A model generated the notes under the pieces. That model was not told where the DNA came from and ran no database searches. It was given only the letters and a program-made list of their open reading frames with translations. 64,000 bases of DNA, taken from the NCBI GenBank assembly GCA_004764695.1, contig SMSO01000031.1, forward strand, positions 8,848,761 to 8,912,760, written 5' to 3'. The stretch comes from Schizochytrium sp. TIO01 (Eukaryota > Protista > Bigyra: Labyrinthulomycetes). The position numbers and the translations under genes were made by a program. Positions 6,385 through 60,632 of this stretch are shown here, piece after piece (within the stretch, counting starts at the first letter, position 1; each line of letters opens with the position of its first letter).

Positions 6385-7149
6385 TTTGACGATTCAAGTT
6401 AAGTGTGACTAACTGCTATATGACTTTAAGACCCCCCCTCCTATATCGTTAGAGATTGTTTCGTAGAGGTTTTTCTCTCAAAGACCAGCAGTGAAGCGCT
6501 AAGTATGCGCGTCAGATAATCTTAATTAATTTATGCTCCTATCTAAAATTTCATGAGCTCCAGACAACTGTTAGGTCCTTCCTTGATCAGAAAGCATCTC
6601 CGAAGGAATGCTTAGCTATTGTAACGACGTTTCCAACGTTTGTAGTAACGCATTCGGATGGTTGAGATAGTGGGATAGAGTTGACGACGCGGAATGCAGA
6701 CTTAATCGGGTGCACACTTCTCTTCCATTTTTTTTTCATTGGACACCTTGCATTTCATTACATTCCACTGCATTCCATTCTGCACCAAAATCTTCAAGTC
6801 CCAGATTCTCTAGTTTGCGATGGGTGGTCAAAGAAAAGAAAAGAATGTTATAGGCCTCTAGAACTCTGCACAAGAGTTTCTTCTTTTGGTTCGAGCGAAG
6901 GTCTTACTCGCGGCAAGGAAGTCGAGGCGAGATAGGCATATAGGTGTAGTTGGAATCAAAGCTTGGGCTTAGACAACTGTTTGCCACCTACAAAGTAATG
7001 AAGCATTAATAAGCTTCAAACAGGAAGATCTTCCTTTCGAATGAGCAGCATTGATTCTTTACAGCAGCAAAACCCTAATACATCGATTGCTTGCCGCATA
7101 GGCGAGCTAGGTGCAGGTAGGCGCAGGGCGCCACAAAGGCAGGCGAGAG

Positions 7150-9620: not shown

Positions 9621-11429
9621 ATGGCGAGTTGCAAGGCGCTGGCGTTTCTCTTGGTGGCTTGTATCTTTGGCGTTGGCCTCTCGTTTCTAAGTGAATCTGA
9701 AACGTTGTCAAGGCTATGGGCTCTCGACGACACAGCTCCAAGTAAAGAAAGGCCAAAAGAGCGCCAGGACAAAAAGGTGAAAAACATTGGAAACGAAGAA
9801 CTAGTAGAAGCGAAGAAGACCTCGGGTCAAGCACAATACTCCCATCAAAACTTGGGCGATAATGCAGTCAAGCGTTCTAAAGAGTTAGCCAACCACAGTG
9901 TCAACGAGACTCCAGCAACTGCCTCACCATCAATAGTTTTCCAAAATGAAGTTGGCCAGGATTTCTTGCCATCAAGCTCTGAATCAAAGCCCCACAATCA
10001 AAGTGGTGACTATTTGTCATTCAAGGGCACATTTTCACCCACTTCAGAAGATTTGGGATCTGGACCCAGGAATGAGAAAATCCCATGGCCACAGGAACAA
10101 CAAAACCGAAGCCGCGCCTTTGGGTTAGGTATCGCGCATCCTAAGCTTAAAGATCTCTTAGAGCGAATTCGCAATGAAACAGCTGTCAAGATTGCAGTGC
10201 TTGGCGGAAGTGTCTCAGCAGGAGGGGGTAACATAACAGCAGAAAAACGCTATTTTAGCCACTATACGCACTGGCTGAAAAACCTAACGTCATCACCTAG
10301 AAAAATCACGCTTTCTAACTATGCGCAAGGCGGGGAAAATTCATTATATGGGGCTCTGCTTTTCTCAGCTATTGTTCCTTTGGATACTGATTTAATATTT
10401 TGGGAGTATTCTCCAAATGACAAAACGTATCCTGGATTAAATGGCTGTTGTAGACCCAACGATATGATATATATCCAGGATGCGTTTCTTCGGAGGGTTT
10501 CATCTATGAATCCATTGCCAGTTGTTATTCTAGTGTATACGTGGTCGATTCCTTCTCACAAAGATTTGATCCGAGGGCGTTCAATTAAAGATAAGTCTCT
10601 TCGTAGTACCAAAGACCACGCCCTCCAATTCCCATTTGTTGCGGGCTATGTTAGCCTCGTGGAGGAGCTCTTACAGAACCCAAACCTCCCAAAGCTCGTT
10701 CCAGAAGTAGAAGAGATGTTTTTTGCAGATAAGGTACATCCAAATGAAAAGGGGCACACTCTTATGGGTAAATTACTTATTGATCTTTCTGTCATGGCAA
10801 GCTCCTCATCATCCAAGTCAGCTACAAATGGTGCTTCCCTTATCCCACAGCCAAAGTGGCCTTGCGATGACAATGGACTCTCTATCAGGAATGCGTTAGC
10901 TGAAGTGCAATACACTCAAGCTTGGACTGCTTTACAGCCTTCCATTCCCAACCAGCAACTTTCTCTCGTATTTTATGAAGCTAGCCAGAAGAAGGTTTCA
11001 CCTATTGAGGACAGACTTAAATTTATTATCAACGGAAAAACGAGTCAAATTAGAATTGATCGTAAATATTCTCTGGAGCTTCCATGTTGCTCTCGCGACG
11101 AATACCTTCGGTTTAACATAACCTCTGCAACGCGTCAAAAGGCTTTGAATTTTCGTGTTGATTATCCTGATGACCTTATCGTATATATTAGCTCATCAGC
11201 TGATCTTGATTCCACATTTGTATATAAAGCCCCTTTAATTGACGCCTTCAGTTGGACATCAACATCATGCGTACTTCGTACTTTTCCTAATGGGGAATTC
11301 CGTTTGTGGGTAGATCTTGATTCCATCGCCGTAGACCCGAAATATGTGTTTATTTGTGAAAATATATGCAACAAAAGCGACACGCACAATACACTGAGAT
11401 GGTTTACCGCGATCGGTGGCCAAGTATGA
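9621..11429 (+). CDS. SGNH/GDSL-type hydrolase, signal/anchor, paralog 2
   Basis: N-terminal hydrophobic segment, then GGSVSAG, AQGG, WEYSPND and DKVHPN. Colinear with paralog 1 through to the C-terminal RWF. Confidence 0.82.
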   Translation: MASCKALAFLLVACIFGVGLSFLSESETLSRLWALDDTAPSKERPKERQDKKVKNIGNEELVEAKKTSGQAQYSHQNLGDNAVKRSKELANHSVNETPATASPSIVFQNEVGQDFLPSSSESKPHNQSGDYLSFKGTFSPTSEDLGSGPRNEKIPWPQEQQNRSRAFGLGIAHPKLKDLLERIRNETAVKIAVLGGSVSAGGGNITAEKRYFSHYTHWLKNLTSSPRKITLSNYAQGGENSLYGALLFSAIVPLDTDLIFWEYSPNDKTYPGLNGCCRPNDMIYIQDAFLRRVSSMNPLPVVILVYTWSIPSHKDLIRGRSIKDKSLRSTKDHALQFPFVAGYVSLVEELLQNPNLPKLVPEVEEMFFADKVHPNEKGHTLMGKLLIDLSVMASSSSSKSATNGASLIPQPKWPCDDNGLSIRNALAEVQYTQAWTALQPSIPNQQLSLVFYEASQKKVSPIEDRLKFIINGKTSQIRIDRKYSLELPCCSRDEYLRFNITSATRQKALNFRVDYPDDLIVYISSSADLDSTFVYKAPLIDAFSWTSTSCVLRTFPNGEFRLWVDLDSIAVDPKYVFICENICNKSDTHNTLRWFTAIGGQV

Positions 11430-14860: not shown

Positions 14861-16447
14861 ATGTTGAACCGCCCTTTAAACTTATGTGTCTCGTTTGTAT
14901 GTTTCCTTATGGTGGTTTCGATGCCTTTGTATCGGCGTATTAACTGGAACCCCCAGTCAACAAGAGAAATTGCAGGTCAACACAGCGCAGACTTTTTGCA
15001 AAACAAGCCTGGGGTTGCTCTAGATGTCGAGGAGAAATCGGGCTCTTCGTCAGTCTGGAATAAAAGTTCGTATACAATACCGTATGTGGATTTGCAGTCG
15101 AAGCGCGATGCCCCGTTTGGCTTTGGTGCTGGCAAAGATGATTTTAAGAAGTTGCTAGAGCAAGTACGCAGCGGAGCGAAGGCCAATATAGTCACAGTTG
15201 GCAGCAGCATCACAGCGGGGGCCGGTGACGTACCATCATCCGAAAGGTATTTTGAGCATTATATCAACTGGTTGACATCTTGGGCTAATATATCTACAGA
15301 GGCTGTGCCGGAAAGAATTAACTTCACGAATGCTGGTCAAGGCGGGGCCACATCAGTGTATGGTGCCTTGCTTTATTCTGTACTAGTACCCGAAGGCACT
15401 GACCTGCTTTTTTGGGAATTCTCTGTGAACGACAAAAGCTTAGAAGATGACGGCCTTTGCTGCTCTAAGGAGGACATGCTTTTTATTCAGGATTTATTTT
15501 TGCGGCGTGTTGCTGCGATGAAGAAGCCGCCTGTCGTCGTGTTAGTTTATGTGTGGTCATCTCCTCTCGTCAAAGATTTACTAGCGGGGGTTAACTTATA
15601 CGATTCGTCATTCGAAAGTACATCGGAGCATGCATTAGCGTTCCCATTTGTTGCCGGTTACGTTAGTATGGTCAATGAAATCAAGAGATGGGGTGATGAC
15701 ACATTAAAGGTCCAGAAGGCCCGAAAAAAATTATTCGCTGACCGTGTACACCCTAATGGAAAAGCTCATCGGATCATAGGTCAACTTTTACGAAATCTTT
15801 CAATTGCAACATTGGAAAGCTCGCCAAGCAGTACAGACTTAAAAATAACACCAAAACACATGTTGACATCCAGAGAAAGTATTGATTGGCCATGCCAGAC
15901 ATATGGACTTAAAATTGGGCGTGCTTTACAGTCTATGCGAAAGACATATGCCTGGACTTTACTTGAGCCAACAGACCATGGTCACAATCTACCAGCGACG
16001 ACCTGGAATAGAGTAACTGGTGAGACCAGGAATGTCCTTGAAACGTCTAAGACTGTTCTGACTGGCGTGACGAGCTCCATTCGTAAGGATCGTAAATATG
16101 CACTCACACTACCATCTTGTTCTGATCACAATTATATTCGCTTTGACCTGACAGGTGTACAAAGACCAGCTGCATTTCAAATCTTTGTGGATGATGCAGA
16201 TTCCGTCGAAGTCTACACCGCAAATACGTCGAACCCAACTGCAATAAAGATGCACAAGTTGGAAATCGAAGATGCTGGCGCGTGGACTGGAACAAATTGC
16301 ATGTTTCGAACCTCACCTCGTTCTGATTACCGTGTTTGGGCGCATATTAATCCTGTTCTGGAAGCAAGTTATGCTTTCGTGTGCCAGCCCCAGAGCTATG
16401 GTGACACCCCCGCCCTAATGCGCTGGTTTGCAGTCGTTGAGGTTTGA
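14861..16447 (+). CDS. SGNH/GDSL-type hydrolase, signal/anchor, paralog 3 (more divergent, shorter stem)
   Basis: N-terminal TM, then GSSITAG, AGQGG, WEFSVND, IQDLFLRRV, DRVHPN and a terminal RWF. Confidence 0.82.
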   Translation: MLNRPLNLCVSFVCFLMVVSMPLYRRINWNPQSTREIAGQHSADFLQNKPGVALDVEEKSGSSSVWNKSSYTIPYVDLQSKRDAPFGFGAGKDDFKKLLEQVRSGAKANIVTVGSSITAGAGDVPSSERYFEHYINWLTSWANISTEAVPERINFTNAGQGGATSVYGALLYSVLVPEGTDLLFWEFSVNDKSLEDDGLCCSKEDMLFIQDLFLRRVAAMKKPPVVVLVYVWSSPLVKDLLAGVNLYDSSFESTSEHALAFPFVAGYVSMVNEIKRWGDDTLKVQKARKKLFADRVHPNGKAHRIIGQLLRNLSIATLESSPSSTDLKITPKHMLTSRESIDWPCQTYGLKIGRALQSMRKTYAWTLLEPTDHGHNLPATTWNRVTGETRNVLETSKTVLTGVTSSIRKDRKYALTLPSCSDHNYIRFDLTGVQRPAAFQIFVDDADSVEVYTANTSNPTAIKMHKLEIEDAGAWTGTNCMFRTSPRSDYRVWAHINPVLEASYAFVCQPQSYGDTPALMRWFAVVEV

Positions 16448-27639: not shown

Positions 27640-27806
27640 GAATGGGAGAGAAAGAGAGAAAAGTTTAAATGGTTCTTGAGAGAGTGAGTGACTGAGAGAG
27701 AGATAGAGAGAGAAAGGGAGAAAGAAAGAAAGGAAGAAAGAAAGGCTTTTGCAGCTCAGAGGAAAGCAAAGCAAAGCAAAGCAAAGCAAAGCAAAGCAAA
27801 GCAAGC
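27640..27806. repeat. Purine-rich tract plus (AAAGC)n microsatellite just upstream of GGC1
   Basis: GA-rich run at 27640-27745, then about 8 AAAGC units from 27763. Confidence 0.85.
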
Positions 27807-27862
27807 AATTCCCAATCAACCAAACACACCGCCTCCAACCAGCCTTCCAAGCTACGTCCAAG

Positions 27863-28816
27863 ATGGCCTTCCGCTCTGAGTCCCAGCACGGCGTTGTCGC
27901 CTGCTCTGCCGCCCCCTCCGGCGGCTCCACCTCGGCCCGCCTCATCGGTGGTGCTGCCGCTGGTGTGAGTGAGATCCTCATCTTCCACAGCGTGGACACC
28001 GTGGCTAAGCGCCTCATGTTCTCCAAGGTCAACGTGCGTGGCGCCAACTTTGCCGAGACCATGGCCAACACCAACGCCGTCGTCTTCCGTGAGGCCGCCA
28101 ACGAGCCCAACTTCTTCACCAAGTTCCGCAGCCTCTACCCCGGTCTCGGATTCGCCGCTGCCTACAAGATCTCCCAGCGCATCTACAAGTTTGGTGGCCA
28201 GCCCATCGTGCGCGACTTCATCAACAACAACTACGGTGAGAACTTCACCGGTACCTTCGGTGAGCGTACCGGCAAGACCCTTGCCTCTGCCTGCGCCGGC
28301 TCCCTCATGGGTATTGGTGAGGTTGCTCTCCTCCCCCTCGACGTGCTCAAGATCAAGTCGCAGACCGCCCCCGAGACCCTCAAGGGCCGTGGCATCATCG
28401 ACCTCGTGCAGAAGGAGGGATTCGGACTCTACCGTGGTGCCAGCTGGACCGTTCTCCGCAACGCCCCCGGTTCCTTCGCCCTCTTCGGTGGCTCTGCCGT
28501 GACCCACCATGGCATCTTCGGCCTCGACAACCCCAAGGATGCCACCGTCTTCCAGAACTTCGTTGCCTCCATCGTTGGTGCCATCACCTCCATCACCGTG
28601 GCCAGCCCCGTCGATGTGATCAAGACCCGCATCCAGTCCCGCCCCTTCGACTCCCCCGAATCTGGTTTCCAGATCATCAAGAACGCTCTCCGCGACGAGG
28701 GCTTCACTGCCTTCTTCAAGGGTCTCACCCCCAAGATCCTTGTCGTCGGCCCCAAGCTCATCTTCTCCTTCACCGTCGCCCAGAGTGTCATGAACTTCTT
28801 CGAGCGCCGCATGTAA
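27863..28816 (+). CDS. GGC1: Mitochondrial GTP/GDP carrier (SLC25 family, Ggc1/Yhm1-like)
   Basis: ATG at 27863. Segments ARLIGGAAAGVSEILIFHSVDTVAKRLM, SLYPGLGFAAAYKISQRIYKFGGQP, GIGEVALLPLDVLKIK and RNAPGSFALFGG closely follow yeast Ggc1 as I recall it. Three carrier repeats and strong C-ending codon bias. Confidence 0.92.
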   Translation: MAFRSESQHGVVACSAAPSGGSTSARLIGGAAAGVSEILIFHSVDTVAKRLMFSKVNVRGANFAETMANTNAVVFREAANEPNFFTKFRSLYPGLGFAAAYKISQRIYKFGGQPIVRDFINNNYGENFTGTFGERTGKTLASACAGSLMGIGEVALLPLDVLKIKSQTAPETLKGRGIIDLVQKEGFGLYRGASWTVLRNAPGSFALFGGSAVTHHGIFGLDNPKDATVFQNFVASIVGAITSITVASPVDVIKTRIQSRPFDSPESGFQIIKNALRDEGFTAFFKGLTPKILVVGPKLIFSFTVAQSVMNFFERRM

Positions 28817-34152: not shown

Positions 34153-35277
34153 ATGGGGAACTGCCTAGGTAGCTCCGAGTTGGAGCAGGAACGCAGACGC
34201 TTGCTGAAGATGAATGAGCAAGTAGATATGGCACTCGCTCAAGATGCTGAGGCAGAGCAGTCCATTGTCAAAATATTGCTACTGGGAACTGGAAATAGTG
34301 GGAAGAGTACGATTTTAAAACAGTTCAAACTTTTGCACTCAGAGCAGGGTCTTGGCAATAAGTCTGACCATAAAATAACTGTATCCATGAACATTGTCCG
34401 AGGACTTCTTGTCGTGGCGCAAGGCGTGGATGATTTAGAAGAAGTCACTATGTCATTGAAACCTCGAGCTGCGAAACTAGTGGCTCTTCTTCGAGCTAAC
34501 CCAGGTATTAATGTTTGGGATGAGCTGGAAGTGGACAAAAAACCAGAGCAGGTTGCAATGCTTTGCAAAGAGATTTGGAAAGATCCAGCTATGGCTGAAA
34601 CATTGAAGTACGAAGGTAAACTCAGTATGTTGGAGGTGCCGATTGCGTACTTTATGTCACACATCGATCGAATTGCAGAGGCTGATTATACACCAAGCGT
34701 GGACGATATATTACAAGCTCGCGCCCGTACCAGTGGAGTTGTACGAATCGAGTTCGTCATTGACAACACTAAATGTCGGATGCTTGATGTGGGTGGTCAA
34801 AGAAATGAACGAAAGAAGTGGATTTCTCATTTTGATAATGTTACTGCTATCATGTTTTTGGTATCCCTATCTGAGTACGATAAATTCTTGCTTGAAGATT
34901 CTACAGTAAATCGTATGCATGATGCCATGGAAGTGTTTCGAGACATTGTTGAATGCCCATATTTCGAGGAAACCAATATCATCCTGTTCCTAAATAAAAA
35001 GGATCTCTTTGAAGAGAAGATTAAGCAGGTGGACCTTCGTGTCTGTTTCCCAGATTACACTGGCGGTAATGAATACGATGAGGCCGTACATTTTGTTGAG
35101 AGTAAATTTGTGGACATCTTCAAAGCCACGAAGGAGCAGCAAGCTGTAGATTCTATGACGTCGGATATTTATCCTTTTCAGACCATGGCAACAAACACCA
35201 AGAATGTTGAAACAGTGTTTCAACTATCGAAGCATTGCGTATTCAAAGAAAACCTGCGCTCTACCGGCTTAATTTGA
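34153..35277 (+). CDS. Heterotrimeric G-protein alpha subunit
   Basis: MGNC lipidation motif, G1 GTGNSGKST, switch I RARTSG, DVGGQRNERKKW, FLNKKD, G5 TMAT, C-terminal ENLRSTGLI. Confidence 0.96.
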   Translation: MGNCLGSSELEQERRRLLKMNEQVDMALAQDAEAEQSIVKILLLGTGNSGKSTILKQFKLLHSEQGLGNKSDHKITVSMNIVRGLLVVAQGVDDLEEVTMSLKPRAAKLVALLRANPGINVWDELEVDKKPEQVAMLCKEIWKDPAMAETLKYEGKLSMLEVPIAYFMSHIDRIAEADYTPSVDDILQARARTSGVVRIEFVIDNTKCRMLDVGGQRNERKKWISHFDNVTAIMFLVSLSEYDKFLLEDSTVNRMHDAMEVFRDIVECPYFEETNIILFLNKKDLFEEKIKQVDLRVCFPDYTGGNEYDEAVHFVESKFVDIFKATKEQQAVDSMTSDIYPFQTMATNTKNVETVFQLSKHCVFKENLRSTGLI

Positions 35278-36529: not shown

Positions 36530-39500
36530 TTACGGGAGCACGCGCATCATCTCGGGCTTGGTATCCTCGCCGGTCATAGAGGCAGCACGAGCACGGCGGG
36601 AGAGCAGGTTGGTGCCGAGCATACGCTTCTGGACCTGGGAGTTCTTCTCGATGAAGTCAAACTTCTGTCCAGAGCGGCTCGGGCTGCCAGGGTATCCCTG
36701 CTTCTCTGCGCCGGAAGCGCGGAGAAGCTGAGCAGTGGGCTTGCTGTAAGACATGGACTTGGAACCAAGGGCATAAAAGTCTTGAATGGAAAGGCAAGGG
36801 ATCTCCTTGACAGACACCATGGCGCTGATGAGGGTAGAAGCGGCCTTCTCGTTGGTGAGAAGAGAAATTCCGAAGTCCACGGCAGTACGGCGGATGCGGT
36901 ATCCATCAGACTCATCGGGACGGTTCATTACCTCAGGCACGTTGATGACAAGACCAATAGCACCATCAGAAAGAAGATCCTGAATGTTGGGGTGCACGCT
37001 TGAAGACGGCTTGGCGACAGCCTCAATCTCCACGCCATGCTCCTTGAAGTGCTTAGCAGTACCCTCAGTACCGTAGATCTTGTATCCCATCTTCTGCAGA
37101 GAGATGGCATGCGGGGCCAGGGCCTCCTTGGCTTGGCTAGGACCAACAGCGAAGAGGATTCCCTTGGACTTGTCCGGAATCTTGAGACCACTGGAGAGCA
37201 CAGAAAGGAGAAATGCCTCGTGCATGTCCTGGCCGAAGCAAGCAACTTCTCCGGTAGAGCTCATCTCTACACCGAGCGTGGGGTCGGCACCCTGAAGACG
37301 GGTGAACGAGAACTGCGGTGCTTTGACACCAACGTAGTCGAGGTCAAGAAGACGAATGTTGGCCGGAGTCACGGGAAGGCCAACCATAGCGCGGGTAGCA
37401 AGCTCGATGAAGTTGGTCTGGAAGGTCTTGCTGACAAAAGGGAAGGTACGCGATGCGCGAAGGTTCAACTCGAGACAGAGCACGTGGTTATCGCGGCACA
37501 AGAACTGCACGTTGAAAGGACCAGTGATGTTGAGTGCAGCTGCGATGTTACCTGCAATACGCTTGATACGGCGCTGAGTCTCGGTGTAGAGCTTCTGGGC
37601 AGGGAGAACAAGCGTAGCATCACCAGAGTGAACACCAGCGTTCTCGACGTGCTCAGAGATAGCGTAGTTGAGAATGGTACCGTCCTTAGCGACAGCATCG
37701 AGGTCAACCTCCTTGCAGTTAAGCATGAACTTGGACACCACAACAGGGTGCTCAACGGAGACATCAGCAGCATTCTCAAGGAAGTCAGTCAGTTGCTCCT
37801 TGTTCGCAGCCACACGCATGGCAGCTCCACTGAGAACGTAGGAAGGACGCACAATGACGGGGTATCCGACGTCGCAGGCGAACTTGTCTGCAGCCTCAGG
37901 AGTGGTAGCGGAAAACCATGCGGGCTGGTCCACACCGATGGAGTCAAGGAGAGCGGAGAACTTGTTACGGTCCTCAGCGCAGTCGATAGAGCTGGGAGAA
38001 GTGCCGAGAATACGGGCTCCCTGGCGCGAGAGCGGAAGGGCAAGACCCTGCGGGATCTGGCCACCAACACTTACAATAACACCCATGCTCTGCTCGGTCT
38101 CGTACACATCGAGAACGCGCTCGAAGGAGAGCTCCTCGAAGTAAAGGCGGTCAGACTCATCGTAGTCAGTCGACACGGTCTCAGGGTTGTAGTTGATGAC
38201 AATAGCAGGAAGGCCGTTCTTGCGAAGGGTGCGAACACACGAAACGGCACACCAATCAAACTCAACGGAGCTACCAATGCAGTAAGGGCCGTTACCAAGA
38301 ACCATGACTCCGTTATCCTCAAACGAGAGATCGTGCTCGGAAGCGTTGTATGTCATGTAAAGATAGTTGGTCTGGGCAGGGAACTCAGCAGCAAGAGTAT
38401 CGATTTGCTTCACAAACGGGGTGACGCTGAGCTCGTGGATACGGCGACGACGCACAGAGATCTCGTCAGACTTGACAAGCTCAGCAATACGCTTATCAGA
38501 AAATCCGTGGCACTTGAGAGAGCGCATCATGGGTCTCGAGATGGCGTGCGGGCCACCAACCTGGGCAAGCTGCCTTGACATGTCAGTGATGTTCTTGAGC
38601 TTGGCAAGGAACCATCTGTCAATGCGAGTCAAAGCATGGAGACGGTCGACGGTGTATCCATTCTCGAGAGCGCGGGCAACGGCGAAGAGGCGCAGAGAGG
38701 TAGGGTTCTGGAGCTGGCTCTCGAGGTCAGCATCGCCAGTGTAAGAACGAGCGTCCTTTTTATCAAGAGCAGACGAGTCAAAACCGGAGAGAGAAGGGTC
38801 AACCATGCGGACAGCCTTTTGGATGACCTCCTCGAACTTCCTGCCGATGGCCATAACCTCACCAACAGACTTCATCGAAGATCCGAGCGAGTCAGCGACA
38901 CGGTCGAACTTCTTAAGATCCCAACGAGGCACCTTGGCGACGATGTAATCAAGGGCAGGCTCGAAGCATGCAGTGGTAGTCTGGGTAACGGAGTTGCGGA
39001 CCATGACGAGATCCTTTCCAAGAGCAAGCTTGGCGGCAACATATGCGAGAGGGTAGCCGGTAGCCTTGGAAGCGAGAGCGGAAGAGCGGGAGAGACGAGC
39101 ATTGACTTCAATAATGCAGTAGCGCATCGAGGTAGGGTGGAGAGCGTACTGAATGTTACACTCACCAACGACACCAAGGTGGCGAACAACCTTGAGAGCG
39201 GTCTTACGAAGCATGAAGTACTCATCGTTGGAAAGAGTCTGCGAAGGGGCAATGACAATAGAGTCACCGGTGTGGATACCGAGAGGGTCGAAGTTTTCCA
39301 TGTTACACACGGTCACACAGTTGTCCTTGCAATCGCGAACAACTTCGTACTCAACCTCCTTCCATCCGCGGAGATCCTCGTCGATAATAATCTGGTGAGA
39401 TGCAGAGAAGGCCTTCTTACACAAAGGCACAAACTCGTCCATATCTTTAGCGAAACCAGAACCGAGACCACCAAGAGCGAAGGCGGCACGAACCAGAACG

Positions 39501-41215
39501 GGGAATCCAATCTTCTCGGCAGCAGCCTTGGCCTCATCCATAGTGTGAGCAGAGATGGACATGGCAGCGTGCTCGTCAATCTCAGCGAGCTTCTGGGCAA
39601 AGGCCTCGCGGTCCTCAGTATCCATGATGACCGGGATAGGCGTTCCCAAGACACGAACGTTGTGGCGCTCAAGCTCTCCGCGCTTGTAGAGCTCGACACC
39701 AACGTTGAGGGCAGTCTGACCACCCATAGAAACCAAGATGGAGTCAGGGCGCTCCTTCTTGATTACACTGAGGACAGCGTCGGGTGTGACGGGGAGAAAG
39801 TAGACCTTGTCAGCGAAGTTCTTACTGGTCTGAACGGTGGCGATGTTTGGGTTAATGAGGATAACCTCGATAGATTCCTCTTTGAGGGCCTTAATGGCCT
39901 GACTTCCAGAGTAATCGAACTCACCGGCCTGGCCGATGGAAAGACCTCCGGAACCAACAAGAATACACTTGCGGACAGGCTTCACCTCGAACATGACGGG
40001 GGGTACCAGAGTGTGAGTGGGCATCTCGTCGCGAACACTCTTGAGGAACTCATCAAAGAGAAAGGTGGTGTCCATGGGACCTCCGCGGGCCTCCGGGTGA
40101 AACTGAACCGAGAAGTACGGCTTGCTCTCGTGAATGATACCTTCGTTGGTCATGTCGTTGGCGTTCATGAACAGAGGCTTCCAGCCGGACGGAAGAGTCT
40201 CAGTGTCCACAGCATATCCGTGGTTTTGCGAGGTGATGTAGCACTTGGTTGTGCGAAGGTCAATCGCAGGCTGGTTAGCACCACGGTTACCGAAGCGCAT
40301 CTTGTAGGTCTTGGCTCCGGCAGCAAGAGCGAGAAGCTGGTTACCGAGGCAGATACCAAAGATGGGGACAGGTGCCTTGCGACCAGGGCTGGACTCGCGT
40401 TCCATGTTCATCACCTTGCGGATGTTCTCGATCGTAGCGGCGGCCATAGTGGGGTCACCAGGTCCGTTACTGATGAAGAGACCATCGAACTTGCCGTTCA
40501 ATGCGTCAATGTCGTAGTCATAGGGGAGGACAGTGAGTTCAACGCCACGGCTGAGGAACTCGCGGACAATGTTGTACTTCATACCGCAGTGGTAGGCAGC
40601 AATGCGAGGGCTTCCACCGGCATTGAAGACCTTGACCTCGGAAGGCGAGACCTCAGCGACGAGGTTGATCTTGTTTGGGTCATCGAACTGGATCGAGTCC
40701 TGGGCAACTTCGATCTTACCGAGTGCACTGCCCTCTTCACGGAGAATCTTGGTGAGCATGCGGGTGTCAACGCCGTGAAGAGCCGGGATTCCGGCACGGC
40801 GGAGCCAGGCGCCAAGGCTCTGGGCAGCGTTCCAGTGAGAGTAGGTGTGAGAGTAGTCAGAAACGATGAGACCGGCAATCTGGATCTCGTCGCTCTCGTG
40901 GAACTTGGGAATTCCGAACTCATCCTTCTCGTCACCAGGCACACCGTAGTTGCCAATGAGAGGGTAGGTGAGGACGAGAATCTGGCCACGGTAAGAAGGG
41001 TCAGTGAGAGACTCAGGGTAGCCGACCATACCGGTGTTGAAGACGACCTCTCCGGCGACGCTCTTGTTAGCACCGAAGGAGAATCCGGTGACCTCTAGAC
41101 CGTTCTGAAGGGTGAGCTTGGCAGTAGCATCCGTGGGCTCGAGGCTGGCCTCTTGGCCTTCACCGGAGACCATGATGGGGCTGTGTGTAGACGCAAGACG
41201 GTCAATGCCAGACAT
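36530..41215 (-). CDS. Glutamine-dependent carbamoyl-phosphate synthetase (fused small and large subunits, MGS domain; no DHOase or ATCase)
   Basis: First ATG at 41215 (MSGIDRL). GEVVFNTGMVGYPESLTDPSY, SNGPGDP, GICLGNQ (catalytic Cys present), FHPE, GSGGLSIGQAGEFDYSG, two ATP-grasp halves with HTGDS and HSGDA, C-terminal IRRTAVDF. Confidence 0.97.
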   Translation of the reverse strand: MSGIDRLASTHSPIMVSGEGQEASLEPTDATAKLTLQNGLEVTGFSFGANKSVAGEVVFNTGMVGYPESLTDPSYRGQILVLTYPLIGNYGVPGDEKDEFGIPKFHESDEIQIAGLIVSDYSHTYSHWNAAQSLGAWLRRAGIPALHGVDTRMLTKILREEGSALGKIEVAQDSIQFDDPNKINLVAEVSPSEVKVFNAGGSPRIAAYHCGMKYNIVREFLSRGVELTVLPYDYDIDALNGKFDGLFISNGPGDPTMAAATIENIRKVMNMERESSPGRKAPVPIFGICLGNQLLALAAGAKTYKMRFGNRGANQPAIDLRTTKCYITSQNHGYAVDTETLPSGWKPLFMNANDMTNEGIIHESKPYFSVQFHPEARGGPMDTTFLFDEFLKSVRDEMPTHTLVPPVMFEVKPVRKCILVGSGGLSIGQAGEFDYSGSQAIKALKEESIEVILINPNIATVQTSKNFADKVYFLPVTPDAVLSVIKKERPDSILVSMGGQTALNVGVELYKRGELERHNVRVLGTPIPVIMDTEDREAFAQKLAEIDEHAAMSISAHTMDEAKAAAEKIGFPVLVRAAFALGGLGSGFAKDMDEFVPLCKKAFSASHQIIIDEDLRGWKEVEYEVVRDCKDNCVTVCNMENFDPLGIHTGDSIVIAPSQTLSNDEYFMLRKTALKVVRHLGVVGECNIQYALHPTSMRYCIIEVNARLSRSSALASKATGYPLAYVAAKLALGKDLVMVRNSVTQTTTACFEPALDYIVAKVPRWDLKKFDRVADSLGSSMKSVGEVMAIGRKFEEVIQKAVRMVDPSLSGFDSSALDKKDARSYTGDADLESQLQNPTSLRLFAVARALENGYTVDRLHALTRIDRWFLAKLKNITDMSRQLAQVGGPHAISRPMMRSLKCHGFSDKRIAELVKSDEISVRRRRIHELSVTPFVKQIDTLAAEFPAQTNYLYMTYNASEHDLSFEDNGVMVLGNGPYCIGSSVEFDWCAVSCVRTLRKNGLPAIVINYNPETVSTDYDESDRLYFEELSFERVLDVYETEQSMGVIVSVGGQIPQGLALPLSRQGARILGTSPSSIDCAEDRNKFSALLDSIGVDQPAWFSATTPEAADKFACDVGYPVIVRPSYVLSGAAMRVAANKEQLTDFLENAADVSVEHPVVVSKFMLNCKEVDLDAVAKDGTILNYAISEHVENAGVHSGDATLVLPAQKLYTETQRRIKRIAGNIAAALNITGPFNVQFLCRDNHVLCLELNLRASRTFPFVSKTFQTNFIELATRAMVGLPVTPANIRLLDLDYVGVKAPQFSFTRLQGADPTLGVEMSSTGEVACFGQDMHEAFLLSVLSSGLKIPDKSKGILFAVGPSQAKEALAPHAISLQKMGYKIYGTEGTAKHFKEHGVEIEAVAKPSSSVHPNIQDLLSDGAIGLVINVPEVMNRPDESDGYRIRRTAVDFGISLLTNEKAASTLISAMVSVKEIPCLSIQDFYALGSKSMSYSKPTAQLLRASGAEKQGYPGSPSRSGQKFDFIEKNSQVQKRMLGTNLLSRRARAASMTGEDTKPEMMRVLP

Positions 41216-41576
41216 CTTGCTTATTGTTGGTTTGGGGTTGAGTAGTTCCTTCGAAAACGACGAAGAAAGCAAACAACAAAAGTAGAGCAAAAATTACCTA
41301 ACAACGACGACGACTACGAAGACGACGACGAAGAGGAGCAGGAATACACGAGCAGCACTAGCTCGAGAAATCCAAGAACCTTGAATCACGGGAGTGAATC
41401 AATGAAAAGTTTGTTGGGTGGGTTTTTACGGTGGCCTGCGCTGCAACACTCAGCGCACGCACAACCTACAATTGAAGCCGCTCGCGAACCGCGGTTGAGA
41501 GCGGACCTCGCGTGCTTCTTCGCCGGTTTGGCTTTCTAGTTTGAGCTTTGCCTGCCGCGACCAGCCGATATCATTC

Positions 41577-49615: not shown

Positions 49616-51076
49616 TCATTGATCAAGGCTAGACTTCTCTCGAAGGGAGGCATAATGATCTTCAAGAACATAATCCCGCCACAAGCTCGCTTTCACAAAC
49701 TTTACAACCAGATTAGTTGCGCAAAATTGACTAATCAGCGTTTGGAAATAGTAGTAATTCGCGTTACCAGAACCCACAGTGAGCCACATATGACGCATGA
49801 TTGGCAGCATAGAAAGACAGCTCAACATTCCAACACCAAAAGGAAGAATGTGCTGCATACGCTTGATACTTAAAGGATGCATCACAAAAAGTGTCATCAA
49901 AAGCCCAATGCCGCCTACATCCGGATAAGGAGTTGCAAGTTCAACGATGATTAGAAGCACATGAGCAAGAAGCTGAGGCCGATGGCCAAACGTTATGCAA
50001 AGCGGCGCAACCAAAAGTGCGATTGAGCTTTGGAAGAGAAGTTTGAAAAACTCGCGAGATTCTTCAAATACCTCAATAAAGAAGTACCACCATAGTCCAA
50101 TGTTTGGGGATAAATCAGAAAGTTCCATATCACGCAACAAACCTTTATAAACAGACTCTACAAGAACGTGAGGTAATTGTTCAAGTTCAGGCAATGGTGA
50201 TGACAGATTTGGTGAATGCAAATTGTACAGAAACAGACCAGCATACGTGAGTGTAGTGATAAATAAAGCTGCTCCACTGGTAAGCATTCCAGCTACTGAG
50301 GTCCTCGCACTGCGTTGAATCTGCAATACAAAAGGTATGATGAAAATTATGTATCGGAGGTCAAGACTAATAGCCAGTCCTAGAGCAAAGCCTCCGAAGA
50401 GGAAGTCACACCGCAGTGCCCTCCACATCGACAGCAGTACTGCAAGAATGCCCACAGAATTAATATTTCCTGCAAGGAATCCCAGTAGAGTGCATGGGTT
50501 CAGCAAATAGACCATGGCAACAGTCATGGGTGCATTTTCCTTTGCAAGTAGCGCAATCTTGGGCAAACTTTGTGCTCCCAAGCCACTGTTTGCCTGCACC
50601 ACTGGAAGGCCATTGACAAAGTCCAGTCTGCCCAGATTATTTGCCTTTGCGCCACTCCTTATAGGTTGAGTATTGGTCACCAATTCGTACTCATCTGCGT
50701 CAGCCTCCTCGCCCCTGTATTCGTGCATGATGATATGCGCCGTGAGTATGAGCACCAATGCAATTGCGAGATCCACAGCGCAGAGCAACATTATCGCGCC
50801 CATATCCTGTCCCTCCGCAGATTCTGGCTCAAAGGTCATCCCAAAAATGTCTACGAAGATCGGAGACCTACGAAACATCTCTCCATCGAAAGGCGAGCGC
50901 CCCATGGCCTTAAGAAAGGCGCCCTCCCGCACTGCCGCCAAGGAAGATCTCGATGTCACCAGTTCATTCGGGCCTGCGGCCTCAAGCATTGCCGCTGCCC
51001 CACTGTGCATAAGAGCTACTCGCACAGCGGCACCGGCGAGAAGTGGCCACATGGCAAGCCCCACCGCCCCGCTCAT
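49616..51076 (-). CDS. PIGU: GPI transamidase subunit PIG-U/Gab1
   Basis: Multi-pass membrane protein with EG.FL...G.SPFDG, YLLNP, PNIGLWWYFFIEVF and GSGNANYYY motifs characteristic of PIG-U. Confidence 0.92.
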   Translation of the reverse strand: MSGAVGLAMWPLLAGAAVRVALMHSGAAAMLEAAGPNELVTSRSSLAAVREGAFLKAMGRSPFDGEMFRRSPIFVDIFGMTFEPESAEGQDMGAIMLLCAVDLAIALVLILTAHIIMHEYRGEEADADEYELVTNTQPIRSGAKANNLGRLDFVNGLPVVQANSGLGAQSLPKIALLAKENAPMTVAMVYLLNPCTLLGFLAGNINSVGILAVLLSMWRALRCDFLFGGFALGLAISLDLRYIIFIIPFVLQIQRSARTSVAGMLTSGAALFITTLTYAGLFLYNLHSPNLSSPLPELEQLPHVLVESVYKGLLRDMELSDLSPNIGLWWYFFIEVFEESREFFKLLFQSSIALLVAPLCITFGHRPQLLAHVLLIIVELATPYPDVGGIGLLMTLFVMHPLSIKRMQHILPFGVGMLSCLSMLPIMRHMWLTVGSGNANYYYFQTLISQFCATNLVVKFVKASLWRDYVLEDHYASLREKSSLDQ

Positions 51077-54835: not shown

Positions 54836-55851
54836 GATAGCCTCGAGTCTTTTCGATCCTTGTTGCTGATACTCACTACCTCTTAAATGGGTTTGCTGAT
54901 GCTTGGTTTGATACTGAAGTGTTGAGGGTCAACGAGCCCAAAGTTTTGAAGGAGGCTGAAGCTCCTCAATTCTGCGCAGCAGGCTATGGTACTGGATCGT
55001 TGAAGACGCTCAATCCGAGCAGGGAGGACCGATCCTCTCCAGGTGCCAGAGCTCAGGGAGCGCCTAGCACGAAGAATCCTGTCCCCAGGCTCCTTAACCA
55101 GCCCTGAAGGAATAATTTGCTAAAGTCTGAGCGGAGGTGGCCAAAGCTTGCAAGGTTTGTCAGTGCTTGGGGTCGTTGCTCTCTTTGCTTCCTTCAAAGG
55201 CCCAAAATTGTAAAACGGCCCATGTCCTCGACGGGTCCCCGATAAGGGTGTGCGTATATATTCATAAGGTGTGCACTCGACTTCGATCATAGGTATGAAG
55301 ACAACTACAGAATTAGCCAAGAGTTCTTTATTATGAATGTTTTGGCTTAGGTTTTTGCAAAAGTTAAAAATCTTTTAAGGGGCTGCATTTAACCGGGGAG
55401 AATAGCGCTTACGTAATGATTAATTACAAGATTCCCCAACTGTCAGAAGGGGTTCATGTTTGTTTTAAATTCAATTTCTCACCATGGAACTCCTCCACAG
55501 TAGATCGGTGCGCAGCTACAATGACATTTTAAAGACATTAATCGTAAGGATATCATTAGTTTCTGGCGAAAGAGTTTCAGTATTAAAATTGAAGATGCGG
55601 TATGTATTTGAATCGAAGTGATTAAACGATGCTTAGGATATCAACAGAGGAGATAAAGAGATCTGTGCATACCAAGCAAAGAAATTGGAGGGACCCAGCA
55701 AACCTTTTTTATGCCAAGTTGTTGTATAAAAGACAAAATAAAATGGAAAAAATGGAAAACAGATGAACAAACTAATGCTAGTATGAGAGGAACAGTCTAA
55801 GTAAATGTCGCCAACACAAGAGAAACGGATCATGACAAATATTACGCAAAC

Positions 55852-57303
55852 TTAAGAAATCAAGCAGCAGCCACCACTCTCTGGCGCGGTTTGACGACGT
55901 GTTGAATCACCACCAAATCCGATAGTACTTGCCAAAAGGCGAGTACTTGGACGCGCGATCTCTGCTTCCGAAACACCAAGCACGTCCGCCATACTTGCAA
56001 CCGAATAGAGATTCGCTTGGTCCGTGTATCCATCACTGTAAAGGTAGGCAAAGGCGCCGTGTTTCCAAACCTTGGGATCGCCTGAGCCAAGGTCTTCGCC
56101 AGGATTTACCCAACAGAACTTGCGGGCCCCAGCCCTAAGAAGGGGGGCAGCAGTAACGTCTACAAAACGATCAGCTGACAATAACGTCTCGCACATAGTT
56201 TCGTTCAACTCATGCGGGCCGTTAAAGCAGAGGAAAGGATCACTAGTTGCATTAGAGATGAAGCAGTTCGCTGCGACGAGATTTTTTGAAGAGTCAAAGT
56301 AAAGATATCCACCATGCACAAGGAAGAGCTCTAAGAACTGTCTTCCACTTGACTGGTTCTTGGGCGGCAACGCACCCGGAAGCGGCTCCGCAAACGAAAA
56401 GTATCGGGCATCTGCCGGTGCCTTGAGCATTTGTGCCGTGAATGCGTCAACGGTGACTGGCACAATCGGATCAATCTTTACCTGAATGCCGTTTGGTGTT
56501 TCTTGAAGCCGAAGATTGTCGGCCAAACTTGCTAGATCCGACTTATCAAGAGTGATCGACATCGTAGAGAAATCGTCAGAAAACTCGACAGTATCATTCG
56601 TGAGAAGGTGAACTCTGCGAACACCAAGAACGCCTAGAAAATCAGGACCAGTTGATTCCCAAGGATCAGGTGTTGCATCAATGGCACTGCGTGTTTCCTG
56701 AAGGTACTCCCGCACAGAGGGCCCGAGCCGATCTGAGCTGAACGCAGACTGGCCAATAGTATTAGAAAGAGTCCAATATAGCTCAGCAGCTTCGTCAGCT
56801 CTATCAGCGTCAACGGCAGCATCAAGCTTTTTCACGAGCTCATCGACCTTCTTGTCGAGGCGAGTTTGGGAACCCTGGCCAACTATACGCTTCACCTCCA
56901 GTTTGATTGCTTTAAGGTCAATAGAATCTCCAAGCTTGTCTTCATATTCATCGATATCCGAATCAAGGGTAGCCTTGTACTCATTAAACCTCTTGGTGAA
57001 CCTTGAAAGAAACTTAAACCGGAGAAGTGGGGCTGAGTTTTTGAATTCGCGAATGACCTCGGAAGCCTCATACATATGCCAATTTACCTGGTCGTTGAAC
57101 TGAGTAAGCTCCTCGGTGTTTGCGGCTACCTCGAGTATGCGTTGCAATACCAAAACGTTGAACTCAAGGTCCACGCACTGGTAATTGGGATCTGACACTG
57201 CTTTAAGCTGACGAATCGCCAGATCGGCAACATTGATTGCAATCTCTTGTGCAACACCGCTCAAGATGGCATTGCCAATTTCCAGAGCAATGACAGATGC
57301 CAT
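55852..57303 (-). CDS. Protein with MLKL-like N-terminal four-helix bundle, an unknown duplicated C-terminal domain and a CaaX tail
   Basis: 483-aa intact ORF with ATG. The N-terminal QCVDLEFNVLVLQRILE...LTQFNDQVNWHMYEASEVIREFKNSAPLLRF follows the MLKL NTD pattern. Ends GGCCLIS*. Confidence 0.75.
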   Translation of the reverse strand: MASVIALEIGNAILSGVAQEIAINVADLAIRQLKAVSDPNYQCVDLEFNVLVLQRILEVAANTEELTQFNDQVNWHMYEASEVIREFKNSAPLLRFKFLSRFTKRFNEYKATLDSDIDEYEDKLGDSIDLKAIKLEVKRIVGQGSQTRLDKKVDELVKKLDAAVDADRADEAAELYWTLSNTIGQSAFSSDRLGPSVREYLQETRSAIDATPDPWESTGPDFLGVLGVRRVHLLTNDTVEFSDDFSTMSITLDKSDLASLADNLRLQETPNGIQVKIDPIVPVTVDAFTAQMLKAPADARYFSFAEPLPGALPPKNQSSGRQFLELFLVHGGYLYFDSSKNLVAANCFISNATSDPFLCFNGPHELNETMCETLLSADRFVDVTAAPLLRAGARKFCWVNPGEDLGSGDPKVWKHGAFAYLYSDGYTDQANLYSVASMADVLGVSEAEIARPSTRLLASTIGFGGDSTRRQTAPESGGCCLIS

Positions 57304-59516
57304 CGTGGGCGTACCTGGTCAGCAATCTTACTGTACCACTAAAAAATATGCTTGTAGTGGGCCTTTTTCGCGGGCCGCAATCTACAAGATGAATCAGCTG
57401 GAGGACTAGTGTTGAGTAAACCTCAACCTCAACGTTGCTTATGCCCTGATCAAATAGAACTCTTGCAGTAGATGTCAGCCTCGGTAGCTACGTAGGCCCT
57501 GCGAGATTGGAGTTTGCGCTCCCAATGCTCGAGCTTTGCTTCCTCTCTTAGTTTTGCCTTTGAGACACCCATGCAGCGCGTGCCACTGCTCACCTTAATG
57601 CTACTTCTAATGTGATAGTAGTATTTATGGAGGTGTGCATTATTTAAGGTGTCGTATGAAGATGCCACAGAACTACACGTTTTGTCCATTTCGAGTCTTA
57701 ATGCCTATTATGTAGAATTTAGGTACCCACTTTAAAGTCAAAGGCAATGCCTTCAAGGGGGCGCAGCTTCGTGTAAGGGATGTAGCGCTGTTCAACCATC
57801 TCAGAATGTTGTTTCGTGCACTCTCCAATAGTTGCAGCTCTTTGGATTTACTTGTGCACCAAAGTGGTAGAATTAATTGGGTACCTCAACTGTGTGCCAT
57901 TGCCATTCAAGTTGCACATAGATGGATCCCTACCTTGAAGTGTGAAATGGCAGTGAGCCAGCTTCGGCCATTACAGAAGAGAGGCACTGGTTGATTTTCA
58001 TGACTAGAGGTTCACAAACTTCGCAATTAGGATGCAATATCACGATAATTCTTGTTGAGTGTTGAGGCTCGGAATTATTTCTTTGCAATCGAGCTAGCCC
58101 AATCTTTGAGGTGTCCCTGGAATGTGTTGCGCAACGCAAGAGCGTGCAAACCATCTTTCTTACTGAATATTCTGGCCATTTTGCTAGTAAAGAATCTTTA
58201 AGTAACAAGTTATCAAGTACTCTAGAAAAGGCAACGATTATTGTATTCTTGTTCTGTTTGAGTTTTTTATTCAAGTTAAAAGATTCTATCTGGAAGTGGA
58301 GGAAAGGAAATATTTCGTTTTGTAAATTTTTTCAACTGTTTAAAAAAATTGTTTTAAAAATAACTTTAGATCTCATGTTTTGGCCAAGCTTCAGGAATCG
58401 ACTTCAACTTCTATATGAAAAAACAAAAGAAAGCAATGACGCATTGCTTCACTTAAATCGTCTATATTTTTCATTCAAGTGTGTCGAAAGTTGGTGTCAT
58501 ACTTCTATCTTTTGCAAATTGGTAGGTAAATAATGTCCTCAACAACTAGATCTAGTACAATTAGACCTACACCTGGCAACCAAAACAAGCGATTAAAACT
58601 GCCGCAAAATTGATCAGAGTAATTACAGCGGCGGGCATGGATTCGTTATGATAATGCGTTCTGCATCGTAGCAATTGCGTAGTAACATTTCAAAAAGATG
58701 AAAATAACAATCACGATGCATATAATCTCGAGAACTACGTATTCCATGTAAAACGCCTTGTTTATGTTTAAAGAACCAAATGTTTTATGTTGAAGTAGTA
58801 TAATTAGTAGATTAGTCATTTCCAAACCAGCAGATCGATTCTCTTCAAATCACAGCTCAAGTTGGAACCGCAACCTCATATGTGTAGTCTAGCTAGTAGT
58901 TCAGAATACTTTCCTACTCTCACTACTAAGAGGCAGCTCCTTAAACTCCTTTCACTCAACTAATTTTAATAACCCACTGTGCTCTTAAGGCAGCAGCCCA
59001 GAAACCGTGGTTTGTTCCAATTAGCCTCGCGATGCCCTAGGTGGGCTACCCTTTTGGGAAACAGAGATACGCTTTTCTCAAGTCGTACACAAATTATAAC
59101 TTTTTATTTGTACCTCGAAAAAAGAAAGGAAATGACTATTTATTTCTGTATATATAGAGATCCTCTTATCATTGTCCCATAAATAACTCTGCATCCTGAA
59201 GAAAGTCTTCTGAAAATATATCTTGTTTCGACGGTCGAATTGCGCAGGTGATAGAACAACACCTTCAATTTAATTAGGTAAATCACCTTTTATTTTATTT
59301 TCATAATTTTATATGTAAAGAGACTTTTGAAATAAAAGAGGAGTGAAGAACCAAGTCAATACTCGGAAGGCTCTACCCAGTTGCATTGAGGACTTTGAGC
59401 ATTGAAAAGAGTAAATTTAATTATGCTTACAGCGATAGAGGAATGTAGATTTATTCTTTCTCTCTTTTTCCCGTCACAGTAGCCCTGCAAAACCAAAACA
59501 CCTTACCCAACTCAAG

Positions 59517-60632
59517 ATGAGTTCTTCGTCCAGCAGTCCTCCTCCACTCACTCAAGAAGCTATCAGCAGAATGCCTGCGGATGAGCTCATAGCTCTCGTT
59601 GATGATGACGAACGTATGGTAGAGGTTATTCAAGATAGATTCTTGAAGAAAAAGCTGCGTTCTCGCATTATGCAGCTTGGTGATGAAGAAAGCCTTCTTC
59701 CAGATGAAGATGAAGATGCAAACGACGCCTTTACCGATAAGTTGCTCCATAAAATTTTAAATTTCAAAGACACAGCAACTCACTTCGCTCAACATCCAGC
59801 AACGATCCTAACTACACGGGCAGGATCAACACTTAAAAGGATCCGTGAAGACGCAGAGAATGAAGACGATCTGGACTACGAAGACTCAAACGATGGTGGA
59901 ACAAAACGAGTCGCCGAGAGCCAGGCTTCTGCCGAAGGTTCTGCACAAGGCGAGACGCCGAGGGGTCGAAAAAAACCGTCATCACAAGAGACGAAAGCGG
60001 CTGACACACAGAGAAATTCTACTGTTTTGACTAGCTTTCGATTGGGCCCTAATTTGAAGACCCCCAACATGCGAACCATTATGGGGGGTGAAGCTGTGGG
60101 TTATCCAGACATCATGATCAACGGCGTCTCTAGTTTCGTCAAGACGACTTACGCACTGCAAGATTCTGCATATACACTTGAGCATGAGGGTAAAATGTAC
60201 GCATCTCTGCACACGCTGCAGGGTGACGTATTGCCTCGGGTAACAGCTTGCGGTCGCGATGTTATACTAAACCTGGTAATTTTTGCGACAGAGCAGTGTG
60301 GTCAATCACTGCGCTATCTAACAAAGAAGGAAATACGACAGTATGGTGGACTCAAGGAACTGTACTGGAAGGCTGCTTTGGCTCTTGAAAAGATCCACTC
60401 AGCTGGCTTCATTCATGGAGATGTATCATGGCACAATATCGTTGTGGATGATGCCAGCAACGTAAGATTTATCGACCTGAAGCACAGTAAAAAGTCTCGC
60501 AGTGAGACCCTCCGCCAAGAAGACTTCGACCTGCTTGCGGACGCATTTGACATTGATCCTGCAAGCGATTTTCGGACTTTGTCAAGGACCAAAATTACAG
60601 AGGCGCATCTGGAGAGTAGCGAGATCGTCTAA
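59517..60632 (+). CDS. Atypical protein-kinase-like protein (Crinkler/fungal 'LQG..P' or Bud32/Kdo-like fold)
   Basis: FVK (beta3 Lys), LEHEGKMYASLHTLQGDVLPR, IHSAGFIHGDVSWHNIV and FIDL. Acidic, low-complexity N-terminal half. Confidence 0.78.
   Translation: MSSSSSSPPPLTQEAISRMPADELIALVDDDERMVEVIQDRFLKKKLRSRIMQLGDEESLLPDEDEDANDAFTDKLLHKILNFKDTATHFAQHPATILTTRAGSTLKRIREDAENEDDLDYEDSNDGGTKRVAESQASAEGSAQGETPRGRKKPSSQETKAADTQRNSTVLTSFRLGPNLKTPNMRTIMGGEAVGYPDIMINGVSSFVKTTYALQDSAYTLEHEGKMYASLHTLQGDVLPRVTACGRDVILNLVIFATEQCGQSLRYLTKKEIRQYGGLKELYWKAALALEKIHSAGFIHGDVSWHNIVVDDASNVRFIDLKHSKKSRSETLRQEDFDLLADAFDIDPASDFRTLSRTKITEAHLESSEIV

Follow-up and report, generated by a model that had tools for sequence, protein, structure and literature searches.

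Locus, transcript and conservation of the gene

The stretch of DNA studied here, referred to as the window, comprises 64,000 nucleotides of contig SMSO01000031.1 of Schizochytrium sp. TIO01 (positions 8,848,761 to 8,912,760 of the forward strand). On its minus strand, at 55852-57303, it encodes a 483-residue protein called here the bundle protein. Its N-terminal helical bundle is probably related to that of MLKL and is followed by brace-like helices, a C-terminal domain new to Pfam and the PDB, and a predicted lipid anchor. An original prediction made from the sequence alone had placed the open reading frame (ORF) and its GGCCLIS end exactly there, and had read the product as an MLKL-like death effector fused to a novel domain and a CaaX anchor. 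The ORF starts with ATG and its product ends in ...APESGGCCLIS; upstream of the ATG the frame stays open for 5 codons only. The gene and its product can be divided as follows, with the source of each assignment in brackets (methods and abbreviations are introduced below).

55739-57544, minus strand: unspliced transcript-like unit of ~1.8 kb, with a 5' untranslated region (UTR) at ~57304-57544 and a 3' UTR at ~55739-55851
55852-57303, minus strand: coding sequence, 483 amino acids and stop, single exon (ORF listing)
57259-57303, minus strand: residues 1-15, hydrophobic N-terminal segment MASVIALEIGNAILS, preceding the part that aligns with MLKL residue 1
56920-57258, minus strand: residues 16-128, predicted four-helix bundle, MLKL/RPW8/coiled-coil (CC)-like (AF2, VIA, profile, ESM)
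56677-56916, minus strand: residues 130-209, four more helices, brace-like linker (AF2)
55963-56670, minus strand: residues 212-447, α/β domain of unknown fold (AF2)
55870-55962, minus strand: residues 448-478, short helices, conserved FG[GA] motif and disordered linker (AF2, alignment)
55855-55869, minus strand: residues 479-483, CCLIS, CaaX box C480-L-I-S with adjacent Cys479, predicted farnesyl and palmitoyl anchor (tail comparison)
57354, 57201, 56553 and 56404: differences between the window and public assemblies, respectively a deletion of 3 bp within the 5' UTR, A35S, T251A and a synonymous change at R300

Data from three studies contain the gene as a discrete unit. In each of the runs X1, X2 and X6, a single contig of 1745-1803 nt without joints spans 55739-57544, coverage is zero on both sides and the downstream neighbour gene lies on a separate contig. 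The RNA origin of these runs is a guess of the search tool, with which the gene-bounded contigs are consistent; the run assemblies total 34-37 Mb, against 64 Mb in 37 contigs for the genome, a size that, like the contigs ending at gene borders, is in keeping with assembled transcriptomes. A transcript from the Marine Microbial Eukaryote Transcriptome Sequencing Project (MMETSP) encodes an identical protein except for A35S. The gene is real and expressed. The alternative that the ORF arose by chance or is a pseudogene is practically negligible: it is contradicted by the transcript-sized contigs in several studies and the MMETSP transcript, by full-length orthologues at 31-39% identity (P0002-P0005) and by confident models of the domains.

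Full-length relatives are few. Besides these four orthologues, they comprise P0011, P0014, P0015 and P0017, at 23-25% identity. The architecture is conserved between species and the sequence is nearly invariant between strains, the diversity at this gene being very low across runs labelled as several organisms. Word-indexed homologue searches with residues 1-215 or 262-450 recovered the bundle protein itself and nothing else, and a scan of metagenome contigs yielded two loci with the C-terminal domain only and no additional full-length member. The original prediction had proposed a survey of paralogues; none turned up for the N-terminal half when the genome was scanned with it, and the gene is single-copy. 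It is transcribed in ordinary cultures. The prediction had also stated that no protein of this architecture was described, in agreement with literature searches, which found no paper on the architecture or on stramenopile MLKL-like proteins.

The nearest upstream gene (window 59517-60632, plus strand) is a 371-amino-acid ORF lying head-to-head with the bundle-protein gene, 2.2 kb away. It has weak partial matches to kinase folds (Pkinase E-value 4e-6, RIO1, Kdo/WaaP) over the catalytic-loop region and no relative in a search of PDB sequences. From these matches, its product is a putative atypical kinase-like protein.

The predicted N-terminal bundle and its likeness to MLKL

Residues 1-215 were modelled with AlphaFold2 (AF2) from an alignment of 9 sequences in which MLKL was absent, and without templates. 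The model is all-helical, with a predicted local distance difference test score (pLDDT) of 77.6 and a predicted template-modelling score (pTM) of 0.69. Helices at residues 17-35, 41-60, 64-89, 92-97 (a short one) and 99-127 form the predicted four-helix bundle, residues 1-21 being poorly defined. The four helices that follow lie where the original prediction had expected a brace-like segment, and the alignment of a 15-sequence family profile runs on through residue 169 of mouse MLKL, in the brace. The segment that precedes the bundle is hydrophobic (in each of the five orthologues, the bundle protein included, the first 20 residues have a mean Kyte-Doolittle value of ~+1.0), keeps an acidic residue at position 7-8 in the alignment and has a pLDDT below 50.

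The model was compared with 48,161 representative chains by VIA-align (VIA), and MLKL as well as plant bundles were found within the top 50 matches. The MLKL chains have Z scores of 8.4-9.0, root-mean-square deviations (rmsd) of 3.0-3.3 and identities of 18-24%, while all the non-MLKL rows have identities of 2-15%. Chain 6zvo_B is aligned over 110/144 residues (Z 9.0, rmsd 3.0, 24% identity), 6ux8 over 117 residues (Z 8.7, 18% identity), mouse MLKL reaches Z 8.4 with 19% identity, and residues 1-156 of 6d74 fall on residues 19-161 of the model (Z 8.4, 130/156 aligned, 21% identity). The plant matches are the CC domain of MLA13 (9fyc, Z 9.3), the CC-R domain of NRG1.1 (7l7v, Z 8.9), AtMLKL3 (6ka4, Z 8.5) and the CC resistosome of wheat G10 (9h2l, Z 8.4).

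Family profiles were searched against 177,635 PDB sequences. With the 9-sequence profile (A1), the seven best matches are all MLKL (E-values from 2e-4 to 3e-3, the next match being at 0.15), profile positions 11-126 being aligned on residues 12-134 of the human MLKL chain. Mouse MLKL is also the top match of the 15-sequence profile (A6; E-value 5.8e-4). The HMMER alignment pairs Q42-C43 of the bundle protein with Q27-C28 of MLKL, together with the ...EA..EI..F.N... block, which is the register that the original prediction had drawn by eye. The offset to MLKL is 15 at the start and 7-8 after a 7-residue insertion in MLKL, and VIA gives identical offsets (model residues 16-136 on residues 1-129 of the MLKL chain). 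This agreement between a sequence and a structural register increases the confidence in the homology. In the ESM Atlas, the nearest neighbour of residues 1-215 is an oomycete cluster partly annotated as MLKL_N (0.92, 183/256 shared features), and the subsequent neighbours are MLKL_N, RPW8 and MCAfunc clusters at 0.87-0.88.

Several results weigh against this relationship. The Pfam model MLKL_N (PF22215) matches neither the bundle protein nor 8 relatives; its silence on the whole genome at E-values up to 10 carries little weight, since it is also silent on 14 control genomes, which are all prokaryotic. Submitted singly to Pfam, NCBIfam and the PDB sequences, the whole protein yields only noise (Apolipoprotein at an E-value of 0.15, a XaxA-type toxin subunit at 0.036). 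The match to MLKL is lost among PDB sequences when the profile is built from 5 close orthologues (A4) or from 5 distant relatives (A5), and it is absent with a 7-member outgroup profile (A7). Moreover, ApoA-I reaches an E-value of 1e-3 with the 15-sequence profile, which indicates that helical composition contributes to the signal. By sequence alone, the homology to MLKL is borderline. The fold match alone proves little, because VIA Z scores below ~13 are common among helical bundles, as the tool itself warns, and designed helical repeats and CAMP factor outscore MLKL (Z 10-11.7). The original prediction had also proposed a check by AlphaFold and Foldseek; on residues 1-215 the four-helix bundle was indeed predicted, but Foldseek found nothing significant in the PDB, MLKL (2msv) being ranked 29 with a probability of 0.57. 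Finally, the bundle is acidic: only 3 K/R residues occur across the stretch that matches α1-α2 of MLKL, and the basic lipid-binding patch is not kept.

These results leave room for a different explanation, in which the N-terminus would have no kinship with MLKL: it would be a helical bundle or coiled coil of a generic type, used for oligomerisation or as amphipathic helices that bind lipid. The protein would then be a prenylated adaptor whose real business lies in the C-terminal domain, for example bringing a partner or a component of the ubiquitin system to the membrane. The silent Pfam model, the absence of the MLKL signal in three of the five profile variants, the apolipoprotein and designed-helix matches close behind MLKL and the higher structural Z scores of designed repeats all speak for it. 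A second group of helical proteins with the C-terminal domain (P0008, P0024, P0044, P0066, P0068 and P0030, one of them from Batrachochytrium) points the same way: the N-termini of this distant group, which resemble a four-helix bundle, are weakly related to that of the bundle protein (hmmsearch E-value of ~1e-4 in a set of 153 proteins, hhalign probability of 26%), and their own profile did not find MLKL in the PDB. Nevertheless, MLKL is the single best match of both larger profiles among all the PDB sequences searched, structure-based identities of 18-24% are seen for MLKL alone and in a register that agrees with the sequence alignment, and the ESM neighbours consistently belong to MLKL_N, RPW8 or MCAfunc clusters. 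This explanation is unlikely.

Taken together, three partly independent lines (profile, structure and ESM) make it probable that the N-terminus is homologous to bundles of the MLKL/RPW8/HeLo kind. Of the MLKL-like domain originally proposed, the predicted four-helix bundle superposable on MLKL stands; a match to the Pfam family was not obtained and the profile match depends on the alignment. The bundle protein is not an MLKL orthologue, since it has no kinase domain. Scans against Pfam, NCBIfam and PDB sequences revealed neither a kinase nor a nucleotide-binding leucine-rich-repeat receptor (NLR) module in it, as had been predicted.

In its model, the bundle protein has, like animal MLKL (2msv, 6ux8, 6zvo, 4btf), an up-down bundle of four helices in which a short helix separates α3 from α4, and brace-like helices come next. 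In contrast to MLKL, it has no pseudokinase, hence no RIPK3-type phospho-switch, and no basic phosphoinositide patch; it adds the 15-residue hydrophobic N-terminal segment, a C-terminal domain of new fold and a predicted lipid anchor. In plants, RPW8/CC-type heads are membrane-acting effectors released by a sensor part. The bundle fold class is shared with RPW8/CC-R domains, the CC domains of NLRs and plant MLKLs (Z 8.4-9.3), but NB-ARC, leucine-rich repeats (LRR) and kinase are missing, the part that may act as sensor is a new domain with no relation to theirs, and pre-anchoring by lipid is predicted. In the fungal HeLo/HELL proteins such as HET-S, the hydrophobic N-terminal segment of a helical bundle enters membranes after a C-terminal trigger. 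With these proteins the bundle protein shares the concept; a direct match to HeLo in sequence or structure was not obtained, and the bundle protein has no prion-forming or amyloid motif.

The same genome encodes an 871-amino-acid ORF (L013:3847-6462, minus strand, that is G000:C30:7261846-7264461) in which an unclassified N-terminal region of ~250 residues is combined with a complete protein-kinase domain and with armadillo repeats. It was considered as a possible relative, and hhalign detected no similarity between its N-terminus and the bundle family.

The C-terminal domain and the predicted lipid-anchor tail

Residues 205-483 were modelled from 78 sequences, which yielded a confident α/β model (pLDDT 87.4, pTM 0.85). 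The domain contains the motifs PW..G..LG.LGV, VTVD..T...L.IP..A..F.F.YP, HGGYLYFD, F.GP..L, GA..FCW..PGE and HGAFAY. It matches no model of Pfam or NCBIfam, Foldseek found nothing at E-values up to 0.001 in the PDB or in BFVD, the ESM Atlas gave no usable match, and none of the 48,161 chains compared by VIA reached a Z of 5 (the best was 3.5, while the usual best of this tool for unmatched models is 7-8). The novel domain announced by the original prediction is thus borne out for residues 212-447, which have neither a Pfam model nor a fold match in the PDB.

The domain is part of a large family. A search of representative sequences recovered 549 proteins at E-values up to 1e-3, nearly all of which align to residues ~276-427 alone, the core that is kept in distant proteins. 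The family thus counts at least 549 representatives of 50% identity clusters across protists, in stramenopiles, a diplonemid, a chytrid and a metamonad; named carriers include Artemidia motanka, Batrachochytrium salamandrivorans and Anaeramoeba ignava. That this domain is new to Pfam and the PDB and widely distributed is strongly indicated. Some proteins contain 2-4 copies of it, and its partners are diverse: RING (in 10 of the 78 proteins scanned), ubiquitin, EF-hand, endonuclease/exonuclease/phosphatase (EEP) domains, WW, ankyrin, myosin head, RhoGAP, Zeta toxin and LRR. For instance, it is joined to a Zeta-toxin-type kinase domain in P0053, to a myosin motor in P0022 (A. motanka) and to a RING finger in P0026, a protein of A. 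ignava named 'caspase regulator ring finger domain-containing'. The only other copies in the Schizochytrium genome lie in a cluster of ~18 kb (G000:C31:8634466-8651981; loci L002, L003, L007 and L010-L012) composed of three large genes, with open frames of 1267-1354 amino acids, each of which contains the domain; in at least two of them, it is preceded by LRR.

The range of these partners (RING, ubiquitin, LRR, Zeta-toxin, nuclease-like, RhoGAP and myosin modules) suggests that the domain may serve for recognition or as an adaptor, its ligand being a protein or a lipid. In this respect it recalls the B30.2/SPRY domains (TRIM, pyrin) or C2 domains, as it too combines with RING, a death-type bundle, a toxin-like kinase, GAP, motor and repeats. 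By contrast with them, it is structurally similar to no solved fold.

The tail that follows ends in a CaaX box with a neighbouring cysteine, as originally noted, and this feature is conserved. The tails of the five orthologues are CCLIS, CCFG, C....CAVL, CCPIS and CCIIC, all of which have a Cys at -4 and a second Cys adjacent to it or four residues upstream; P0009, a relative with the C-terminal domain only, ends in CCTIL. Among ~146 other proteins compared, only 2 have a Cys at -4. Cys479 is an invariant column of the alignment. In the bundle protein, the Cys at -4 is followed by an aliphatic a1a2 pair and by a terminal residue fit for farnesyltransferase or geranylgeranyltransferase type I, with the second Cys nearby, and the genome encodes prenylation enzymes (three genes for prenyltransferase β-subunits and one for isoprenylcysteine carboxyl methyltransferase, ICMT). 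Residues 464-483 have a pLDDT below 50, and the disordered linker that precedes the box is comparable to the hypervariable region of Ras.

The tails of yeast Ras2 (...GGCCIIS) and Ras1 (...CCIIC) are the classic farnesyl and palmitoyl signal: in Ras, the CaaX cysteine is farnesylated and the neighbouring cysteine is palmitoylated. After a disordered linker, GGCCLIS and GGCCIIC are practically the same motif as those of the Ras-type tails (yeast Ras1/Ras2, H-Ras). The bundle protein is otherwise completely different from Ras, and its own lipidation is a prediction. Judging from the residues, the tail may be regarded as a conserved predicted dual-lipidation signal. P0014 and P0015, which have the same layout of bundle and domain, have no CaaX box; they carry instead ~200 extra C-terminal residues with hydrophobic segments resembling transmembrane (TM) helices. 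Membrane attachment seems to matter, because these proteins would reach the membrane by this alternative TM-like route.

Possible modes of action

The reading tentatively preferred here, as possible rather than probable, is that of a lipid-anchored and autoinhibited MLKL-type bundle that would be switched by the C-terminal domain and would act on its own membrane. By analogy with the systems described above, the farnesylated and palmitoylated tail would keep the protein permanently at the cytosolic face of a membrane, where the brace and the C-terminal domain would hold the bundle inactive. An encounter of the C-terminal domain with a ligand or partner would release the bundle, which could then oligomerise and insert into the membrane that anchors it, letting ions pass or breaking the membrane. 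The lipid anchor would substitute for the phosphoinositide-driven recruitment that MLKL needs. A complex prediction between the N-terminal and C-terminal halves scored 0.00, which speaks neither for nor against their docking. What weighs against this scenario, besides the results on the bundle given above, is that the gene is single-copy, conserved and apparently transcribed constitutively, in contrast to what is seen in arms-race receptors; these traits suit a switch under regulation, or a channel that does not kill, no less than they suit an immune receptor engaged in an arms race. The pre-tethered executioner, the sensor domain and the regulated-death or antiviral role that the original prediction had put forward are proposals by analogy.

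Alternatively, the same architecture could serve a purpose other than killing, as a membrane-anchored non-lethal ion channel, a channel regulator or a signalling scaffold. The precedent is provided by the plant MCA proteins, whose N-terminal ~170 amino acids, related to MLKL_N, have Ca2+ influx activity at the plasma membrane and are fused to a PLAC8 domain rich in Cys (PMC8049495). In MCA1/2 and CNR13 (MCAfunc and PLAC8), as is predicted for the bundle protein, the head related to MLKL_N belongs to a protein that is no kinase and is associated with membranes constitutively, a similarity seen at the level of features only; they differ from it in having PLAC8 or a transmembrane segment instead of a CaaX box, and the C-terminal domain is not shared. 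Clusters co-annotated as MCAfunc and MLKL_N among the ESM neighbours favor this explanation, as do the conservation of a single-copy gene transcribed in normal cultures and the association of the C-terminal domain with housekeeping-type modules (myosin, RhoGAP, EF-hand). Yet the similarity to MCA is limited to feature-space neighbours at 0.88, under the 0.9 level that the tool treats as a lead, the best matches in sequence and structure are the executioner domains of MLKL, and the C-terminal domain is joined to Zeta-toxin and nuclease-like effectors as well. A non-lethal channel or scaffold seems somewhat unlikely.

The preferred reading of a switched, lipid-anchored bundle can be taken further. 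In that case, the bundle protein would be a necroptosis-like executioner that is free of kinase and NLR modules and anchored in advance, its dual-lipidated bundle being switched by an ancient eukaryotic recognition domain of new fold. As RING ligases, Zeta-toxin-like kinases and nucleases of protists are linked to this domain too, it would represent a hitherto unseen sensor of cell-death or immune signalling in protists. This extended scenario, built by analogy, is unlikely as it stands.

The remaining genes identified in the window belong to other subjects. A 1586-amino-acid ORF at 36530-41290 (minus strand) corresponds to a fused glutamine-dependent carbamoyl-phosphate synthase (small chain, glutamine amidotransferase (GATase), two ATP-grasp halves and a methylglyoxal synthase (MGS)-like domain) and overlaps with long ORFs of the other strand that are spurious. 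Three consecutive ORFs of 528-602 amino acids on the plus strand (7111-8919, 9621-11429 and 14861-16447), two of which have weak matches to GDSL lipases, are probably a small tandem family. Finally, housekeeping neighbours that are apparently intron-free lie at 1671-3428, 27749-28816, 34153-35277 and 49616-51076; they encode a PSMD5-like proteasome subunit, a mitochondrial carrier, a G-protein α subunit and the glycosylphosphatidylinositol (GPI) transamidase subunit PIG-U.

The hypothesis is directly testable, since the bundle-protein gene is a small single-copy gene without introns and belongs to a group that can be cultured. Independently of the question of MLKL, the C-terminal domain corresponds to a large unnamed family that merits a family definition and a structure. 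If the bundle is truly a relative of MLKL, RPW8 and HeLo, the protein would illustrate a fourth mode of control of a membrane-attacking head, after the kinases of animals and plants, the NLRs of plants and the amyloid triggers of fungi: lipids would keep the head at the membrane and a new domain would gate it, in a lineage of stramenopiles whose regulated cell death has barely been charted.

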